A DNA stretch of 64,000 nt from the NCBI GenBank assembly GCA_009103225.1, contig RHPI01000140.1:124001-188000 (forward strand), written 5' to 3'. Made by a program: the position numbers and the translations under genes. Within the stretch, counting starts at the first letter, position 1; each line of letters begins with the position of its first letter. The notes beneath the pieces were generated by a model. The model saw only the letters and a list, made by a program, of their open reading frames with translations, searched no databases and was not told the origin of the DNA. This DNA comes from Chlorokybus atmophyticus (taxonomy: Eukaryota; Plantae; Mesostigma and Chlorokybus algae). Of the stretch, positions 35,099-49,400 are shown piece by piece.

Positions 35099-38000
35099 AT
35101 GGCGCAAGACGATGTTGACGATCAGTTGAAAGGTATGCGGCAAGACATAGGCAATTGTCTGCAACACACTGTGAGCGTACTTTCTTACCTGTTCAGTGCT
35201 TGCAACTTTGTTCGGTTCTCTCTTGAGCGTCTGCTATCGCTTTCAGCTCACCGTTGTACTGCAATTCAGCATGCATGTAAGTCAGATTGCTATCTGTGCA
35301 GTGTGTAATGTGCATGCCAACTGTCAGAATCCTTGCAGAAGCCATCAATTGCAATGGCGACGTGCATGAAGTGAAGTCTGCAGCGGAAGCAGCGGCTGCT
35401 GAATGCGATGTTCAGCCCAGTTGGTCTGCGCTTGACAGCGCGATGGAGGCGAAAGTTCGACCCTTTTTAGATCTGATGGATCAGGTATGTGCACACAATG
35501 CATCCTATTGCTTTGCTTGTGTCAATATCTCATCATGTGGATGTTGCCAGTTGCGTCAAGAAGGCATTCAGCATGACTTGGCGATACCGCAAATTGCTGT
35601 GGTTGGCGACCAGTCCAGCGGCAAGTCCAGCGTGCTGGAAAGCCTTTCTGGCATACCTTTTCCTCGTGGCCGTGGAGCAGTCACGAGGTGTCCTATCGAA
35701 ATACAGATGAAGCGTGGAGCAAACTGGGAGGTATGTGCATAACCGTTGATCTTGTGGGTGCCTCATTGACACCGTTGCGGCGCGAACTGGGTTACCAAAG
35801 CAGATAGTTTCATAACCACCATTGCTATCTTTCTTGCAACAGCAAGCAAGCTGAGTTCAAATGCCGTCGCAAGCTCACAAGTGTAGCTGTCAGTAACTTG
35901 CCTACAACAGCATGTGTGTCGCGTATGGCTATGTTGAACTGTAAACTGTGCAGCCATGGAGAGGGACTGCGAGGATAGGTAGTGAAGAGCCTTGCATGCA
36001 TTTGGAATCTCCTGAGAAGATGGAAGGGGCGATCAGGAAGTTGTCCGAGCAGCTTCTGAAGAGTCCAGGAGGGTGTGTGCAGTGTGCTGTTGTTCAACGA
36101 CCTGTACTGCACTGAAAGACTAAGTCCATACATACTGCAGATACTCAGAGACAAGCATTGTGGTTGAGGTGATCTCACCAGATGTGCCCGACCTCACGGT
36201 CATCGACCTCCCTGGCATAGTCCGAACAACGACTGCGGGACAGTCTGATCAAGTCATGACACAGATTGACAACATGTACAAGCGCTACTTGCAGCAAGTG
36301 AGTGTTTGTCTCTTTTGTGAGTTGTCGACCAGACGCTCGCAGAAGCCTTGCTGATAATCACTTGGCGTCACAGGAGCGCACGATTATTTTAGCTGTAGTT
36401 CCAGCCGACCAGGATATTGCCACAATTGAAATTCTAGAGCGAGCCAAGCAAGTTGACCCGGTGGTGAGCACATGTTGCATTTTCTAAAATCGGGCTCAGC
36501 TTTTGAACCCAAGCTGTACCAACATGGCAATTGCTTGCAGGGCGACCGCACAATACCAGTGTTGACAAAGCCTGATAAGGTGTTTCGATCTGAAGAAGAT
36601 AGTGTGATATCTGTCATGAACAACATCACCAAACCGCAGAAGCTAGGGTATGCAAGCTGTTAACTATGTGACATTGTGGTGACAGCGTCCTGCTGACCAT
36701 GGCTTGTGCTAGTTGCTGATATCTGTAAAAGCGATCATCTTGCTGTCATGTGCAACCCAGTCATGGCCAATGCTTTGGCAGGTATGCAATGGTGAAGAAC
36801 CGTTCCGCTCAGCAAATGAAGGACAACCTGAGCATACATGCTGCGCGCAAAGACGAGGAGCTGTTCTTCAAGACCCATCCCAAGTTTCGACAGCTGGACC
36901 CCACACAGCTGGGCATCCAGAATTTGGCAACACGACTGACAACGTAAGCATGATGTTGCTATTCAGTGTTGCTGGTATGGGGTTTAAGCACCATATGCTG
37001 CGCTTTACACATGCTTGTTGGCTAGTATTTCCCTGGTCACTGCTCGGATGCAACCGGTCTCCACACAGTGCATGGGTGACTGCGTATGTGTTAAGTTGCT
37101 TTGCAAGTACCGTCAATGTTGATGTTGTCAGACATACGACAACAGGTCATATGCTTCTACGGTCAACAGCGCTCAATGTGACTAGATGTGGCACTGTAGG
37201 TTGCTTGTGAGCCGCATTGAAGCTGCGCTTCCTTCAATGCACGAGGAGATTCTGGCTCAGTTGACAGAGACCGAAGCGCAGTTGAGAGATATGGGCGTCT
37301 CACCTCCTGATTCGCATGAGGAGCGTCAAAAGGCGCTGATACGTGTTGTGCAGGTAAGTGTTGTTGTTGTAAGCTTGGTTTGCATGTGCAATGCTCGTAG
37401 ATCAAGTACAACCGACGCTGACCAGTGCTCATGACAGGGGTATTATGCAGAGTTAGACGCGGAGGTGGAAGGCCGTGACGGCCGGCCGTCAGAAGCGACG
37501 TTGTCTCTTTACACAAAAGCTATGACATCTTGGCGGCACTTACAGCAGCGAGTTGCGGTGGACTTGAAGCCCAAGTTTGATGATCAGAAGATGAACGATG
37601 ACATTGTCGCGAAGATTGAGGCTCAGCACAGTCGAGAGATACCCGGCTTCTTCAAGTACAAGGTACGTGCATCCAAGTGTTGACTATAGCTAGGGTTTGC
37701 AGCCGTATTGACCAGCAAGTTCGCTTTTGTATCATCAAGTGTTCTGGCAGTTGTTCAAGGAAGAAGTTGCGAGGATTGTAAAGAGTTGGCGATTTGATAC
37801 AGACCTCTCAAGCAAGCAGGTTCTCGCAGCCATCAATCAGACTGTAAATCAGGTACAGAGATTGCATTAAACAGTTGGTAAGCCTTACACGTTCATCTTG
37901 TTATGTTCATTGACACGGTTGTTCTGTAGCTTGCAGTTCAGATCGTGCATCAGTTCCCGCAGCTAAGAGCGACAGTGAAGTCGATTGCGGAGGAGGTTGC

Positions 38001-38758: not shown

Positions 38759-39617
38759 GAGTGAGCGAGAGTGAACCCCACGCGCGCGTGCAAGGTATTG
38801 CGTATTCTTTGGTCTCTAAATTAGTTTTCTTTAAGGCCTCTGTCTGGTGCCGGTTCTAGTCCATGTGTTTGTGTATAGTGTTTGCAGTCCGTCCATTTTT
38901 ACCAAAGGATGCGGACTGCTAGAGAAACACCAGTGCCATTAGGTTGGACATCAGCGCTGTTGATTAGTACAGCAAATCCTATCCCACACAGTGTCTCCAC
39001 TGCATGCCCATACCTGTGGCTGATTGCATGGGTTTTGTTTGGGTAGTCTGTTGCAGATCCTGCTTGCTGCTTCAGCTGTGGTGTCTTGTGGTAGCCATGC
39101 TGTGCCCAAACTATCTCCTACATGGGCACGCATGACGCCATCATTGTCTGCGCGCATTGCTGCCTACACACATTACCCTTCTCATTTTGGTACACCACCC
39201 AATCCCATACACATACCCAAAGAACACTACATGACGTTGCATAATGTCACTAGCCGCATGCCCAGATAATGAACATGGCTGCTGATATGATCTCAGAGCT
39301 TGGGCCCCCTTGACCAGGTGGTGTTGGTGAGAGGAGTGAAAGACGGGTTAGCCTCATGAAGTTTGTGATGCATTTGACTGTTTGCTGACCTTGCTTACCA
39401 TGCCCACTTATGACCAACACAGTACACCTTTCAAAACTGGCACTGTTTGTGATGATACACTGCGCTTGGCTTCCTGTCACATAGAATATTCAATCTGAGA
39501 CATCGCCTGCATGCAATATGCACGCAAACAAGCAGTTGGCATGTTGCCGCTGCAATGTCCTATGGTTGTCTGCTCTACTATACAAGAAATTTCACTGCAA
39601 CTGCCTCTACTCTACAA

Positions 39618-42600
39618 TCAGCCGGCCACTGCGAGCGCAGCCAGCACCGGCAATAGTAAACAGCAAAGCAACATTGAGATAGATGTTGGGTGCTGTGAGC
39701 GCACAGCCACGGCGTCGTTCTGCGGAACGCTTGAACCCGTAGATAATGACACTGATTGCAGTGTAAAGGTCTCCAGGCCTGGCCAACAACAACAAACATA
39801 ACATCAGGTGACATGTGAATGTCCACATCTCAGGAGATTTGTGTGTACTGGTCTGTGCACAGTAAATACACGAGGATGAGTTCACTGTGCACGGGAAAGG
39901 CACACAAACCCACACACACTATCAGATTACTGACCAGCGCCAATGTTGCCAAAGTTAAGGACTAGGCGTCCGTTGCCCGTCACGTCAGATGACGGCGTGA
40001 AGGTCTGCGTCCATGTGCCGAGGTAGTTGTCCATCTGAAAACCACAGCATGATGAGGATTGACCCACAATGTCATTGACAACATCAACATGTATGCTTGC
40101 CTGTATCGTGTATGTTGGCAGCCCACCCAATGGCGCAAACTCGGGTGAGCCGCTATCGACTACAAACTGCACAGATCGCACACTGTACTGCGTCTTGCCC
40201 TGCACACATACACACATATCACAATAGTAGACTGAACAAACACATGTATTGTATCAGCCAGACTGCAGTCTATCAGCCAGACTGGTGCATGGCATGCACA
40301 CACCAACACACTATAATGTCACTCTCGTACTCTGATAGCGAGCGTGTACTTGGTGCCGGCCTTCAGGTAGAGCCCGCCTTGGCTCATTTGTATGTGGAAG
40401 GGTTCGGTCCCGCCGTTGGCGACCGTTATCTGCGTCGATGTGGCCACACCTTTGTCACCTAAGTACAACGCAAGTCTCGTAGGATACAATCACAGGAGCA
40501 GTGAACATGTGTGCACGCATGCGCGTGCTCATGCGCGTGCGCGTGCGCGCGCGCCATGTGTTTGCGCTCTCCTGTGTGTAAGTGTGCGTGCATGCCAGCG
40601 CGTGCGTGCGCATGAATGTGCTGATGCGTGCACGTGCTAATGTGTGCATGTGCACGTGTATGACAACACCTCAAACCATACCGCTGATGCATGAGAAGTT
40701 GGCAGCTGCTGGATACAACGCCCCGAACGCCCACGGCGCCGACCACGCCGCAGTGCATCCGGATGACGGCCCTGCAGACAAGCACATCATCAACACATTG
40801 ATGCAAAGTTGTATACCTGTAGTGTTGCGGTTGTGAAGGTGTTCGTGTGCGTACCTATGTTGAAATTTGAGTTGTAGAGAAGTGGTCGGCCCGCCGGGGC
40901 GGATGAGGGGGGCGGCGAGCACGTCAATGTGACGGACTTGATGGCGAATGACACACCGGAGTTCACGGACGTGCCGAACTGCCAATGGCCACAGTGTGTG
41001 TGGGAGTGCGTAAATGCATGTGTGTGCGTGTGAGCGCGTGCTTGCGTGCACATATGCGTGCACGCACGCACGCACATGCTCACATGCATACTTATGTGCA
41101 TCTGCATGAGTCCGTGCATGTGCATGTGTCTGTGCATGTGCACGCGTTTGAATTTGAATGTGCATGTGTGTGTGTCTCTGCGCGCACGCACGCACTTGTG
41201 TGCGCTTGCGTGAGGGTAGCACACCAGTGGTATGTAAGCTTGAACGTCACATATCACGTAAACACATGCGATCAGCGCTCTAGACCCGTTGTACATCATG
41301 CCCAAACAGTTGTCTCACCTGCAAGGCGACACGTGCGGTCCGCGCCGCGCTGATGCCCGTGAAGCCAAACGCATACGTCTGCTCCGTGGACCTGTTCACC
41401 GAACACAACATTCAGCACATGAACACCCACTTTACTACCATAGCAGCGGGTCTCATATGAACCACAACTGTCTCTCACTCCCAACCAAACTCACCCGATG
41501 CCGATCCAGTTGGTGTCCGTGCTTCCGATAGGCGAGTAGTTGGGCCAACCCGTGTCGACGAGAGCGCGCAAAGCCGGAGCCGCAGTCGCAAGCGAACCCG
41601 CGCTCCTCGTTGCTAACGCCGTCACGGATATCACGTACCTAACAACAACATTATCATTACCACAAACACACACACACACGTGCAATGCGTGCGTGCGTGC
41701 GCACGCCTTGTGTGTGTGCGCGCGTGCATGCACACCCACAAGGCGTGTGCGTGGTGTGCTTGCGTGCGTGTACAAAACACGCACGCACGCACGCACTCAC
41801 ACAAGCACACGTGCACGTGCACACATAGAGCTTGTACAGAGCGCACGCAACAACTCACTTTGTATTGGCTTGAAGGCTGACGCCGAGTTGGCTCAGCTGA
41901 ATTGCGAACGGGTCCGTTGCGCCGTTCGTCACCGAGACCAGCGCGCCCCCGCGTTCCAAACAACCCAACGTCGCCTATAACCACGCGCAAAGAGAGATCA
42001 ATGTTGGGTTGTGGACTTTGCGTTATGCGACGTTGTGTTTGTTGTTGGTGTTGGTGTGCACCTCTGCGGGAGACTTGGTGTCGAAGTTCCAACCGGACAG
42101 AAAAGGGTTGCTCGTGCACGGGGAGTCCGACCCGAATGTTGGGTTGTGTAGTCTGCAAGTATGTGGTTGTGGTTTGTTGGTCATAACAGAGAAAACAAAC
42201 ACGAAGATATAAGACAATTGATTGTGTGAACACATGGGTGCATCACTGAATGGATAATGCATGGTGCACTGAATGCACAAATGAGAACCTTGAAACAGCG
42301 GTTGAAACCATGATACAACGAATGGAGTGATTTTCTCACTTACTGGCCTTGTTGACTAACTCATACCATCACTACGACCGACCCGCATTTGAGCCAATGC
42401 TGGCAAGCAAGAACGCAACCATCAAAGTAAGGCATGAACGTGTGACGCATGAACGAATGAATGAAAAGTGCAACGAAGTGAACTGAAAAACCACTGATTC
42501 CGTGCATGACGAGACAACAAAACACACTCACATGGATACGGCGCAGTCTGCGTATGCTGCTGACGGTGCGGGCTCGTTGCACATCGCGGCAGAACAATCT

Positions 42601-43399
42601 TGATGGCAGCTCACGCACTCGCCTGTGTCGCAGTTGCGGTCGCTGACAGAAGAACGGACACAAAACACAAGTTAGAGTGAGTGACTGGACGAGTGAGTGA
42701 GTGAGTGAGTGAGTGAGTGAGCATATGAATGAACGAACAAGTAAATGATCGAACCAGCTCTTGGATGAATGATACGTGGGTCAATGTGTGAGTTCTCAGA
42801 GTGACTTAGCCAGAAACCACATGAACGTCACACCAATTGGTCACTCCGTTTGTCCTGCAGTGATCAGCTTCTTCCCGTTCACTCACGCATGTATAAACCC
42901 GTCCCGACACGTCTTATGCATATCCCAACACACGCTCACGCTCACCCGCATACGGGGACGTCGAAAGCGGACGGGTTGGCGGCGATGTACTGCGCAGTCG
43001 GGAACGCGGCGGGCGAGCAGTCCACGTTCTCGCTGCCCGGCTTCTGATACACTCTGCGCACGCACACGCAACATGTTGGGATGGTTTTCTCGAACTCAAA
43101 CATCACAACATCGTCTTCATTGTGCACATGCGCACGAGCGCGCGCACGCACACCCACCCACACTTGTTACCGTATATAGTCGACAAGCAGCGAGCCCGGC
43201 ATGGGCAGCGTCTTATCCAGCGGCGAGAAGTCCTCCGCCGACGCCAAGTTCCAGATCAGGTACATGGGCTCCTAACACCACACCACCCACACATCACCCC
43301 ACATCACATCACCCCCCACATCCTCCCNNNNNNNNNNNNNNNNNNNNNNNNNNNNNNNNNNNNNNNNNNNNNNNNNNNNNNNNNNNNNNNNNNNNNNNN

Positions 43400-43443
<44 letters not shown>

Positions 43444-44256
43444 ACCACCACCACCACCCAACCACCCCCCAACCCAACCCAACATATCCCCACAATCCCC
43501 ACCCTCCTCACCAACGGTATGTCCCGCTGGCCCACAGATTGGCCAGCGTTGTTGGTCTGGCCTCTGAGAGCTTCTTGTAATATCTCGTAGACGAGGGTGT
43601 CGTCGAGGAACCAGCGCATGGAGACGCCGGGGCCCCACTCGAGGGCGTACTTGTGGAAAGTGCTGAAATGGGAGGGGCTGCGATGGGGGATGGAGAGTTG
43701 TTGAGTGTGGCTGTGTGAAGGGATGCACACGCACACATGTCCACGCTCACACGTGCATGCGTGCGTGTGCGCCTGCGTGCACGCACACGCACGCATGCGC
43801 ATACCAACGTGTACAACCACGCGCACGGACACGCACATAACACACACGCACCCATGCATACATGGATGCGCAAAGGCACACGCACACAAACATGCGCATG
43901 TGATGCACACAAGCAAACACGCCCACGCCCATGCACACACACACACACACACGCACAATCACACTCCCCCCCACCCCCACCCCCGCCTCCCCTTCACCTT
44001 AGTTTGCTGAGCGCCGACACCGAGTCCTGGTAGAGGTTCCCCTGGTACGGGTTGCGCTCCGTCTCGAACGGCGTGGTCGCGCCAGGGAAGGAGAGGTTGG
44101 CGGCGTAGGAGAGGCCGGGAGGGAGGAGAGGCGCGATCTGGTAGGAACACATGCGTGCATATGTGCAGGCACGCGTGTGTATGCATGTATGGGTCTGTGT
44201 GCATGCTTGTGTGTGCATGCGTGCGCGTGCACGTCCTGATGGCCGTGCGCGAGCCA

Positions 44257-44296
<40 letters not shown>

Positions 44297-45928
44297 ATAC
44301 GCTCATATGCGTACGCACGTGTATCTCTGCATGTACGTTTGCACCCACCCACCCCTGTCCCCGTACCTGCAGCGTCGTGGATATCCCCCCTCCCGCGCTC
44401 CCCCCATACGCCTCCACCAGGTCCCACTCCGGCACCCCCCTTCCCTGTCTCGGATTCAGCCCGTTCCCAGGAGCGCTGTCGCACGCGCTGATCTTCTGAC
44501 CGGAGGAGAAGCCCTCCCAGGAGACGGGGCCGGAAGCGGGGTCGCAGACGGAGTAGGAGAAGGGCCAGAGGCCGTCCGTGGACTCGCGGGAACCTGCGGA
44601 GGGTGGTTGGGTGGGTGTCGTGTGGCTGTTGTACAGTCAACGGGCGGAAGATGCACGTGCGCGTACGTGTTGTGTGTGTGTACACCTGATCGCATATGTA
44701 CACGCACGCGCGCGCGTGCGCGCGCATGCCTATACATCCACATTAAGTGTTTTGTTTCTGTGAGTTGTGTGTGCTGCCCACCTGGTTTTCCGAGGTTTCC
44801 GAGCGACCACAACGCGGGCCAGAATCCGGAAATCGTGCCGTCGCCGGGGAGCTGCACGCTCGCCTCGACGTAACCGCCAGTGAAACAGAACCTGAGTATG
44901 GATGTGTGTTTGCGTGTGCATGCATCACAGTTTTGGTCACGCGAGTGTGTGTCTGAATGTGTGTGGGCTCAGGAATATGTACGCGGGCGCGCGTGCTCGT
45001 GTGCGTGTGTGCGCGTGCATGTGCGTGCACGTGCGTTCTTGTCTTGAGTCTAGGCACGCATGTATGACATTTCCTCTCTCTTCCCCTCTCCCTCTCTTAC
45101 TTGTTCCACGACGACACCATGGCGCTCACAAAGTCGTGCGCCTGTCCGTGCCGATCGTACGTAACATTCTGCCCCAAGCCAGATTCATCAGGCCAAGTCT
45201 TCACGTTGCATAAGCAGAACAAACGAACGAAACCCCCACTTGCCTGAGAGAATGTGATGGTGCCGTAGCCGCCCTTTGTGGTGGCGGCGTAAGGCTTGTA
45301 GACCTCGTGATCGCCGGTCACGGCGTAGTACACGTCCAACGCTTCCCACCTACACGCACGTACAAATACATTTGCTGCACAACTTCATGTAGTGCCCTAG
45401 GATGTACATATACACATCTGTGTCTGTGTGTGTGTCCTGCACATCAACTGCTGTAGCTTGCATACACACACACACACACATGTATGCTTAAAATGGACAG
45501 GTGTATGCGCGTGCGCACACAGACACGCGGACTCGCACGCACATGTATGTGTAGAACACACATACAAACTGTGTGTGAGTCACCCTCCACCCCAAACACA
45601 CACATACACGTGTGTACATGTCATGTGTGTGTTTAGTCTTATAAAATACGACATCGCATGTTATTCGCGTAAGAGCAGCAGCCTTTATTCAGAATGTTGT
45701 GTGCATGCAAATTGTACGCAGCGTTTACTTTGAGTCTGCCCCAGAGTAGAACGATCTGCCATCAGCATTGAACTCGTCGCTGAACACCAGGCCATAGGCG
45801 GCGGACTGGACGGTGACGCTGTTGGCGGCGGAGGGCGTGTCCTTATCGATCCAGTTCGTCGCCGCCGCCGATGCCACCAATGTCACCAGCCAGACCGCCA
45901 CCGAAATTCCCCGCCACCTTACCCCCAT
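39618..45928 (-). CDS. KRE6/SKN1-type GH16 beta-glucan transglycosylase with signal peptide, Cys-rich repeat, two CBM4/9-like modules and a C-terminal hydrophobic (GPI/TM) tail
   Basis: [96 protein letters not shown]. Most downstream exon junctions were checked and are phase-consistent to a TGA at 39620-39618; a gap lies inside one intron. Confidence 0.85.
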
Positions 45929-46442: not shown

Positions 46443-49400
46443 TCGTGTTCCTGTCCAGCTTGCTACAATTCATGTTGCTACTGGTTGTGTTTGTAGTCTG
46501 ATATCAAATGTGCAGTTAGTTGGCGAGGCTGCTGAAGTGACGCGCATCGACCTCAGCGGCTGCAACCTCTACCGCACCGAGGCCGTGGCGCAGCTGATGC
46601 GCTCTGCTCCAAGACTCCACAGGTGTGCAGAGAGTTTCTGACACACATCCACATTGAGTACATCGCTTTTGGACTATTGTGTTTTGTGTGAGCGCAGTTT
46701 GAGTCTGGAGTGGAACAGCTTTGGTCTGGATGATGCGGCGGTGGCGCTGATGGCGGCGGCTCTACCGGACTGCCCATGCCTATCAGACGTATGGCATGGA
46801 TATGGCTATGTTATATACGCAGACACACACGCACGCGTGAACTCACACATGCGCACGTGCCGATGCATACACGCGCAATGCAAATGCGCACATACACTCA
46901 CGGACGCATGCGAACATGCATGCCGTCAGTGACACATGCGCACAGTCAGTCATGCACACGCACACGAGCACACGCACGCGCGCACACACACACACATAGA
47001 AAGCCTCATGCACGTGCTCACCTCCTTCAGGTCGACTTGCGCAACTGCCGCATCGGTCCCACCGGCGCCGCCGCCCTCGCGCGCTCCCTCCGCACCAACA
47101 CCACCATTGAACGCATAGGTGGACACTCTGCCACGCTCATCACTTCACCCACTCACCCACCCACCCACACCACCACACACACACACACACACACACATGT
47201 GTTTCTTGTGTCCCAGATCTGAGGTGGAACCATGTTGGCAACGGGGGTGCGGCGGCTTTCGTTGACAGCCTACGCACCAACCGCATGCTGAAGCAGATGC
47301 CGCTAGCGGGCAACGGGGTGTCCGAGGCACACATAAGACAAATAGGTGGGTGGGTGGGTGGGGGTGGGTGTTGTATGCGCAACAATTCGCCAATTCTCAT
47401 CATCATTAACTATGCATGTGTGTTTTGCGCACACGTACCGTACACATGCCAAGTTACGTGTGTGCGTGTTTCTGCGCGCACACATGTGCATGCCTGTCTA
47501 CCTAAGCACACGTGTGGGGGCGCGTACAAGTGCATGTGTGGGCGCCTGATGTGCGTGAGTGCATATGCACGTGTGCACACAAGCGTGCCCACGTGCTTGC
47601 ACGTCATTGTGTCCGAGTTTTTTGGAATTCATTCATTGTCCTGATAACACCAACAAACTCATCGCAGACGCTCTGCTACAGCGCAACCGCAACGCATCCC
47701 CCGTCGTTCACACCATCGTCGAGACCAAGCCCGCCGTCGACGCCAAAGCCTCCCTCAACGCCGACAAGGCAAGGATAAGGATGAAACACTGTGACATTCA
47801 TCCGCAACAACCACAACAATGACATGACATGACAGTAGCGATGGCAATGCGCGTGCAGGTGGTTGTGCTGGAGAGGCAGCTGCTGCAGGTGAAGGAGGAG
47901 TTGGTTGGGGCGCGGGCGGGGGAGCGGGACGCCACAGCTCAACGGGACGGCGCCAGACAACAGGTGGACATATATGAGCGATGAGACTTAGTCTATGGTG
48001 CAACTCCGTCGCTGAGCCAGCGGGTTGAGCACGTTGGCAGATAGACATTAGCAGTAGCAAAGCGTGCACGCACGCGGGGCACGCGCGTGTATACGCACAT
48101 GTACACATGCGCACACACACACACTCGCACACTCCTGTACGCGGGTGCACATTTGCACCTGTACGTGGGCGCCCGCGTGCGGCCATGCACGCGCTCACGT
48201 TTGCATACGTGCGCGCCTGTGTGTGTGCAAACACACACAATGCCTTGCTATGCAAGTACAAGTTCGTACAACCAGATCGCTCATTCATCTGAGCGCCTGT
48301 AAACTGCGCTCAGATCAATAAGCCAAATGCAGTCATACACCTGATTGGAACATAGATCCAGATGGCACTGACGAGTGTATGTACAGATCATGAAGCTGGA
48401 GAAAGAGTTGGGTCTGGAACGCGAAGCTTGCCTGAGCGCTAGCGAACAATGCAAGAAGCTCGCGCAGGAGCTGAAACAGACTCAGGCGGTGAGACAAATG
48501 TAACAAGCATTTGTGTGCCGTTGCTCTTGATTATGAGACAAACAAACCCATATCACAGATGCTCGCGAGCGTTGAGACCAAGCTCGCTGCGTGCGAAGCG
48601 CGCGAGGTGGCGAGCAGAGAAGCCGAAGCCGCCCGAACCGCTGCATCAGGCAAGCTATCGTAGTTGTTGTTGTTGTTGTTGCTGTTGCCACATGCCCACA
48701 CTTGTGTTCGCCCTCAGACGTTCAACTTGCCGAGGCCCGAGCGCGCATCAGAGCCCTTACCTCGGAATGCGACTCCTCCCGCGCCGCTCTGTCCCAAGCC
48801 CAACACGACCACCAAGAAAGGTACACCCTTTCTCGATCTCCCTCCCCACACTCACCCACTCACTCTCTCTCTCTCGCAGTCTCTCCTCCCTGTCTTCGTC
48901 CCACGCCTCCGCGCTGGCGTCGTCGCGTTCCGCGGTCGAGGAGGAGCGGCGGGGGAGGGAGGCCGAGCGGAAGGGGAGGGAGGAGGAGAGGAGGGGACGG
49001 GAGGAGGAGAGGAGAAGGGCAGAGGAACGGGAGAGGGAAAGGGAGAAGGTGGGTGTTGTGTTGCGGTGGATGGGTGGGTTGGTGCAGCTGTGTGTTGTGT
49101 TGCAGTGTTACACTGGTGCAAAGGCGTGCAAAGGGGTTGCTGATGTGGCTGTGGCACTGGCACTGGTAGCAGTGTTGCTACTGCTTGTACTGTCGCTGCT
49201 GCTGTTACTTGTTGCTGTCACTCGTAGCAGTAACAGCCGCTTGCACGATCAAACAGATGAGTGGATAGAGAACCGGTACCACTAGTATTGACACACAGTG
49301 GCAGCGCCAGTAGCAGTAGCAGGTGGCTTAACTTGCCAATGCTACTGCTGGTCACAACACAATTACACAAGCAGTGAGAGAGCAGTACCAGAAGGTCACC

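Follow-up and report, generated by a model that had tools for sequence, protein, structure and literature searches.

Glycoside hydrolases of family 16 (GH16) with a catalytic domain of the Kre6/Skn1 type are described from fungi, where they reside at the Golgi and at growth sites as type II membrane proteins, with a cytosolic N-terminal tail and without any carbohydrate-binding module (CBM) (PMC13604645). They also occur in stramenopiles and haptophytes, where the TGS proteins act on storage chrysolaminarin, a polymer that green algae do not make. GH16 catalytic domains of another type are found together with tandem CBM4 modules in bacterial laminarinases, such as Lam16A of Thermotoga maritima. 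Among fungal wall transglycosylases anchored by glycosylphosphatidylinositol (GPI), Crh1/Utr2 combine GH16 with CBM18, and Gas/Phr combine GH72 with CBM43. Here we describe a gene of the streptophyte green alga Chlorokybus atmophyticus that appears to join a Kre6/Skn1-type domain to two modules of the CBM4 type. It occupies positions 45928..39618, on the minus strand, of a 64,000-nucleotide stretch of contig RHPI01000140.1 (assembly GCA_009103225.1, positions 124,001 to 188,000; hereafter the window, in which all coordinates are counted). Our preferred interpretation, to which we give a probability of roughly 60%, is that it encodes a secreted, surface-tethered Kre6-type beta-glucan enzyme held on glucan by its pair of CBM4 modules.

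The gene was rebuilt from exons placed by their in-frame translations. Its 20 exons amount to 2448 nt including the stop (815 codons plus stop), run from an ATG at 45928 to a stop codon at 39620-39618 and have a G+C content at third codon positions (GC3) of 0.77. According to the splice table, the 19 introns (66-379 nt) have consistent phases throughout, 17 of them being GT-AG and two GC-AG; their G+C content is 42-61%, except for intron 7, which bears an assembly gap and reaches 71%. An earlier reading of the window (the original prediction) had proposed such a phase-consistent chain of exons. The chain holds over all 20 of them, and every peptide quoted in that reading is indeed encoded on the minus strand where it had been placed. 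The gene is a nuclear gene of C. atmophyticus; contamination was considered and rejected in view of the 19 spliceosomal introns and of an existing Chlorokybus gene model. This model, P0001 (EukProt Chlorokybus atmophyticus P005315 = JGI Chlat1 5785 = Chrsp387S09018), encodes 503 aa. The searches reported here used single exons, a two-exon CBM core profile or P0001. The features of the locus are as follows.

39618..45928, minus strand: whole gene, 20 exons (phases consistent throughout the splice table; GC3 of the exons 0.77)
45860..45928, minus strand: start codon and signal-peptide-like N-terminus of about 23 residues (residues 5-20 form a hydropathy peak and small residues follow)
42946..45928, minus strand: exons 1-9, Kre6/Skn1-type GH16 domain, GH16_2-like (exon-wise matches to Pfam PF03935 in order, positions 91-478)
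44412..44429, minus strand: catalytic ExDxxE hexapeptide, exon 5 (read from the translation; located where the PF03935 match 233-295 ends)
43272..43511, minus strand: intron 7, holding the gap 43328-43399 and a long C run (GT donor, AG acceptor; flanking exons at profile positions 411 and 413; same splice in P0001)
42532..42642, minus strand: exon 10, Cys-rich linker with 6 Cys in 36 residues (translation; no Pfam family)
40919..42152, minus strand: CBM4-type module 1, exons 11-14 plus the beginning of exon 15 (exon 12 at 29-30 bits against the bacterial CBM4 model; exons 11, 13, 14 and 15 follow in order)
39738..40882, minus strand: CBM4-type module 2, from the end of exon 15 through exons 16-19 to the start of exon 20 (exon 17 at 47 bits and exon 19 at 14-15 bits against the same model, in order; weak Pfam CBM_4_9 match on exon 17)
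39621..39674, minus strand: hydrophobic C-terminal end of 18 residues, GPI-signal-like (hydropathy 2.2-2.9 to the last residue; small residues before it, no charged tail)

The first nine exons carry the catalytic domain. Exons 1, 2, 4, 5, 6, 7, 8 and 9 match the Pfam family PF03935 (SKN1_KRE6_Sbg1) in strict order over positions 91-478 of its 501, with 43.1, 23.2, 52.4, 38.0, 11.0, 11.7, 14.1 and 22.1 bits, respectively. Exon 3, too short for scoring, occupies positions 174-192, and the exon junctions fit the profile within one or two residues. Since three exons each pass the 30-bit cut-off of this family alone, the GH16 assignment is far beyond chance. The general GH16 model PF00722 matches exon 7 only (16.9 bits). 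Exon 5 encodes, at 44429-44412, the ExDxxE motif of the beta-bulge type, one of the GH16 motif types described in PMC6827312. As the exons follow PF03935 in order and this motif is present, the domain is, as judged from its sequence, of the Kre6/Skn1/TGS type, CAZy subfamily GH16_2 (naming as in PMC10543733), and complete with its catalytic motif, in agreement with what the original prediction had claimed for both. The neighbours of exon 5 in an atlas of protein clusters are eukaryotic SKN1/KRE6 clusters (0.93), which is to be taken as a lead only, and a scan of genome contigs, a method that detects close relatives only, retrieved no bacterial relative of this exon. Sequence searches of the PDB gave no match for exon 5 and weak but real matches to GH16 laminarinases for exon 4. 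The latter ranked below top rows of designed armadillo repeats, which we dismissed as spurious sums over repeats.

The C-terminal part contains two repeats of about 150 aa, the core exons of which are 50% identical to each other. BLASTP found no alignment between their flanking exons, so that only the cores are clearly alike. A profile of 48 positions, made by aligning the two core exons, was searched against 1.84 billion representative proteins (E < 0.001) and matched 52 of them, namely P0001, the product of the locus itself, which ranked first, and 51 others. Among these 51 non-self matches, 44 contain PF02018 (CBM_4_9), 19 contain the laminarinase-type GH16 domain PF00722 and six have secondary matches to PF03935. 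Their other domains include T9SS sorting tails, SLH, Big_2, GH9 and GH5, which mark the proteins carrying them as bacterial. The top non-self match, P0002 (E 1.2e-23), itself matches the solved CBM4 structures 1gui (the best), 3k4z, 1cx1 and 3p6b, and when the exon profile was compared with the PDB, 1gui and the Rhodothermus CBM4-2 ranked first, at non-significant scores. A hidden Markov model (HMM) of 163 positions, built from 71 bacterial modules, is matched in order by the exons of repeat 1 (positions 19-37, 45-75, 86-108 and 115-134) and by those of repeat 2 (3-23, 26-42, 46-81, 118-142 and 148-157), the flanking pieces being weak in both. Because the reciprocal profile search returns almost only CBM_4_9 proteins and the ordered match extends along the whole module, we identify the repeats as divergent CBM4 modules of the sort that laminarinases carry, an assignment made at the level of sequence profiles. 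P0038 and P0053, from Logan contigs of about 1.1 kb, correspond to a 321-aa fragment with two CBM_4_9 modules and a Cys-containing linker before each, and may represent another eukaryotic CBM4 protein.

The two ends of the protein and the segment between its domains also agree with the original prediction, which had noticed a signal-like stretch at the N-terminus, with which the hydropathy profile is consistent, a Cys-rich segment, which is the six-Cys exon at 42642-42532, and a hydrophobic tail, whose 18 residues run to the stop codon. The N-terminus looks like a cleavable signal and has no cytosolic tail, so that the type II membrane topology of fungal Kre6 is absent here. A signal-like N-terminus together with a hydrophobic end forms the classic GPI pattern, and a GPI anchor is the most likely mode of attachment. 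We propose that the product would enter the secretory pathway and be fixed, most likely by such an anchor, on the outer side of the plasma membrane. Its N-terminal two fifths, the GH16_2-like domain with an intact catalytic acid/base pair, would cut beta-glucan, which would then be either hydrolysed or transferred as a piece to another glucan chain. The linker, probably rich in disulfides, would carry the two divergent CBM4 modules and these would hold the enzyme on non-crystalline beta-glucan. The most likely ligand is beta-1,3-glucan, because the modules have their nearest relatives in bacterial laminarinases. Presumably, the enzyme favours transglycosylation over hydrolysis and acts on the wall or sheath of the alga itself.

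In this interpretation, both parts belong to one gene. The GH16 and CBM exons might instead lie on separate transcripts, or the assembly gap might join unrelated pieces, as could be suspected from the published model, which lacks the first six exons, and from the fact that the link between the two parts is provided by a predicted model. P0001 spans 39611-43619 on the minus strand; its translation begins with an internal Met of exon 7, inside the GH16 domain, and the putative signal peptide and the catalytic motif (exons 1-6) are absent from it. However, it connects the linker and both CBMs to exons 7-9, which make up the last third of the GH16 domain, and as the sandwich fold of GH16 cannot start with exon 7, exons 1-6 should belong to the same gene. 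A separate start for the CBM part finds little room, since the sole in-frame Met upstream of exon 11 sits in sequence of GC3 0.39, which looks intronic; in addition, introns 9 and 10 measure only 303 and 379 nt, and every phase fits. The original prediction had named the gap itself as the place where a mis-join could undo the fusion. The Ns at 43328-43399 fall within intron 7 (43511..43272). Of the exons on its two sides, both in phase 0, exon 7 reaches position 411 of PF03935 and exon 8 resumes at 413, and P0001 crosses the gap with identical splice sites. As the flanking exons match such adjacent positions, no coding sequence is hidden in the gap, a mis-join exactly at this point appears very unlikely and the fusion survives this check. 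A run of about 45 C adjoins the gap (43400-43444), and this homopolymer is probably the cause of it. The gene model P0001, the splice phases and the integrity of the domains provide good indirect evidence for one gene, whose 20 exons would be carried by a single transcript, and we consider an origin from two genes or from a mis-join very improbable. Homologue searches with residues 107-450 and 1-106 of P0001 returned P0001 alone, and one with the stop-free open reading frame (ORF) around exon 5 returned nothing, no protein covering exons 1-6 being found, blanks that are weak owing to the word index and the length filter used. P0001 also contains errors: about 28 residues across the junction of exons 12 and 13, in the CBM core of repeat 1, are deleted, exon 16 and the last exon are read in other frames, and 11 intron residues are kept after exon 18. 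The frames that it uses differently fail to align to the HMM of bacterial modules. As it starts inside the catalytic domain and loses a CBM core, automated surveys of carbohydrate-active enzymes would miss both the catalytic residues and the CBMs.

With the same architecture, the protein could also serve to attack foreign glucan, as a laminarinase-like hydrolase, bound to the surface or shed, acting in defence or nutrition on fungal or oomycete walls or on dissolved laminarin. This main rival fits the nearest relatives of the CBMs, which belong to catabolic bacterial laminarinases (the 19 of the 51 with PF00722), the best structural relative, which is the CBM4 of Thermotoga Lam16A, and the subaerial life of Chlorokybus among fungi (PMC7027972). 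We nonetheless find it unlikely, as domains of the Kre6/TGS type are tied to the synthesis or branching of glucan wherever they have been studied (PMC10543733, PMC13604645) and a membrane tether suits work on the alga's own surface. The hydrophobic C-terminus might, on the other hand, be a transmembrane anchor holding the enzyme in the endomembrane system or the vacuole, as in stramenopile and haptophyte TGS, whose order of signal peptide, GH16_2 domain and C-terminal helix resembles the topology seen here (PMC10543733). This is improbable for a protein that ends with its hydrophobic stretch, without cytosolic tail or sorting motif, and that carries CBM4 modules, which are typical of extracellular enzymes, in a group of algae that stores starch and not beta-glucan (PMC10543733). 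Least probable of all, to our mind, is that the repeats no longer bind sugar and serve only as a stalk, keeping the catalytic domain away from the membrane. Their scores under the Pfam threshold and the replacement of Trp by Phe in the core motif of both would agree with such a loss, but this motif is strongly kept between the two repeats and with respect to bacterial CBM4 (47 and 29 bits), and Phe is still able to stack on a sugar ring.

Several observations weigh against the preferred reading of a surface-tethered enzyme held on glucan by CBM4 modules. On single exons, Pfam CBM_4_9 (PF02018) stays below its gathering score, the best being exon 17 with 14.1 bits (E 0.061) against a cut-off of 25.9, and the mis-spliced P0001 has no CBM_4_9 match at E <= 0.01. 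The CBM4/9 claim of the original prediction is therefore upheld by the reciprocal search (44 of 51) and by the ordered HMM match and fails, for these fragments, at the Pfam threshold. That prediction had accepted the lack of any CBM4/9 HMM hit as a refutation, which it escaped only narrowly, through the reciprocal search. The core aromatic position, usually a Trp, is a Phe in both repeats, and the AlphaFold model of P0001, based on an alignment of 12 rows, is unusable (mean pLDDT 40). Among the homologue searches with the parts of P0001 and the exon 5 ORF, none returned a transcript-derived protein. For Kre6 itself, the biochemical activity has yet to be defined in fungi, even in yeast (PMC13604645), and we found no documentation of beta-1,3/1,6-glucan in Chlorokybus walls in the papers that we consulted. 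These walls, the chemistry of which is poorly known, are reported to contain an alkali-soluble, Glc-rich hemicellulose a (PMC10953000).

The architecture, which the original prediction had found unfamiliar, did not surface in any other protein: neither the profile matches among 1.84 billion proteins nor the homologue searches with P0001 included a second protein combining a Kre6-type domain with CBM4, and our searches of the literature and of supplements found no paper on the gene or on this architecture. In published GH16_2 trees, Viridiplantae are represented by Chlorophyta only (PMC7965971), and the Chlorokybus genome paper lists no xyloglucan-type GH16 for the alga and does not mention the gene (PMC7027972). 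The CBM relatives of visible origin are bacterial and often sit on GH16 laminarinases. To our knowledge, CBM4 is confined almost wholly to bacteria. The two CBM4 repeats (39738-42152) do not share their intron positions and phases; the intron before the core exon, for instance, is in phase 0 in repeat 1 and in phase 1 in repeat 2, with an offset of about 6 residues, which suggests that introns were gained after the duplication or acquisition of the tandem. A chimeric origin from a eukaryotic GH16 domain and bacterial CBMs is plausible. In a bolder scenario, which we regard as doubtful when taken as a whole, a streptophyte alga would have fused a Kre6-type glucan-branching domain of eukaryotic descent with the CBM4 tandem of a bacterial laminarinase, introns being added later, and Chlorokybus would make and remodel, in its wall or sheath, a beta-1,3/1,6-glucan like that of fungi, perhaps the hemicellulose a mentioned above (PMC10953000). 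If this were true, it would reveal an unrecognised polymer system in the lineage leading to land plants. Already an action of the enzyme on the alga's own matrix would point to a beta-glucan so far unrecognised in one of the streptophytes that branched off earliest. The enzyme would then also be a soluble, CBM-tagged one of the Kre6 type, on which assays might be simpler than on its fungal counterparts in the membrane, the activity of which is unresolved (PMC13604645).

Other observations concern the introns and the surroundings of the gene. The two GC-AG introns (45169-45243, 75 nt, and 40035-40100, 66 nt) are the shortest of the 19, and both have the donor CAG|GCAAG, which is typical of GC introns. 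Repeats abound in the introns of 40500-45600, both TG/CA-rich and of short units, such as (TGCG)n near 44260-44290 and (GAGT)n near 42690-42720. None of the neighbouring ORFs is glucan-related: one at 35287-35739, on the plus strand, matches Dynamin_N (E 8.7e-15) and is probably an exon of a neighbouring gene of the dynamin family, and 46776-47219, also on the plus strand, has a weak LRR_6 match.

Compared with the known systems, the Chlorokybus protein shares with fungal Kre6/Skn1 (PF03935, GH16_2) the ExDxxE motif and a profile that is matched along the entire luminal domain, and differs from them by its cleavable-looking signal peptide, its Cys-rich linker, its two CBM4 modules and its C-terminal hydrophobic end. 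With the stramenopile and haptophyte TGS (such as PhTGS and Phaeodactylum TGS1/2) it has in common a GH16_2 domain and, probably, a signal peptide and attachment to the membrane at the C-terminus (PMC10543733), whereas these proteins have a true transmembrane helix plus a cytosolic tail that bears motifs for vacuolar sorting, and they lack a CBM. The bacterial laminarinases with GH16 and tandem CBM4 (T. maritima Lam16A, 1gui) follow the same overall logic and provide the nearest relatives of the CBMs. By contrast, their catalytic domain is of the short PF00722 kind, barely matched by the Chlorokybus GH16 exons, which score on PF03935, and their genes have neither introns nor a GPI signal. Crh1/Utr2 and Gas/Phr (the PHR family is reviewed in PMC5753161) have the design proposed here, of a signal peptide, a transglycosylase, a carbohydrate-binding module and a GPI signal; they use another GH16 subfamily or another GH family and other CBM families, so that the likeness is one of functional analogy only and does not extend to homology of the whole architecture. 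Both domains of the Chlorokybus protein are known; their combination turned up nowhere else in our searches, and the lineage that hosts it is unexpected.

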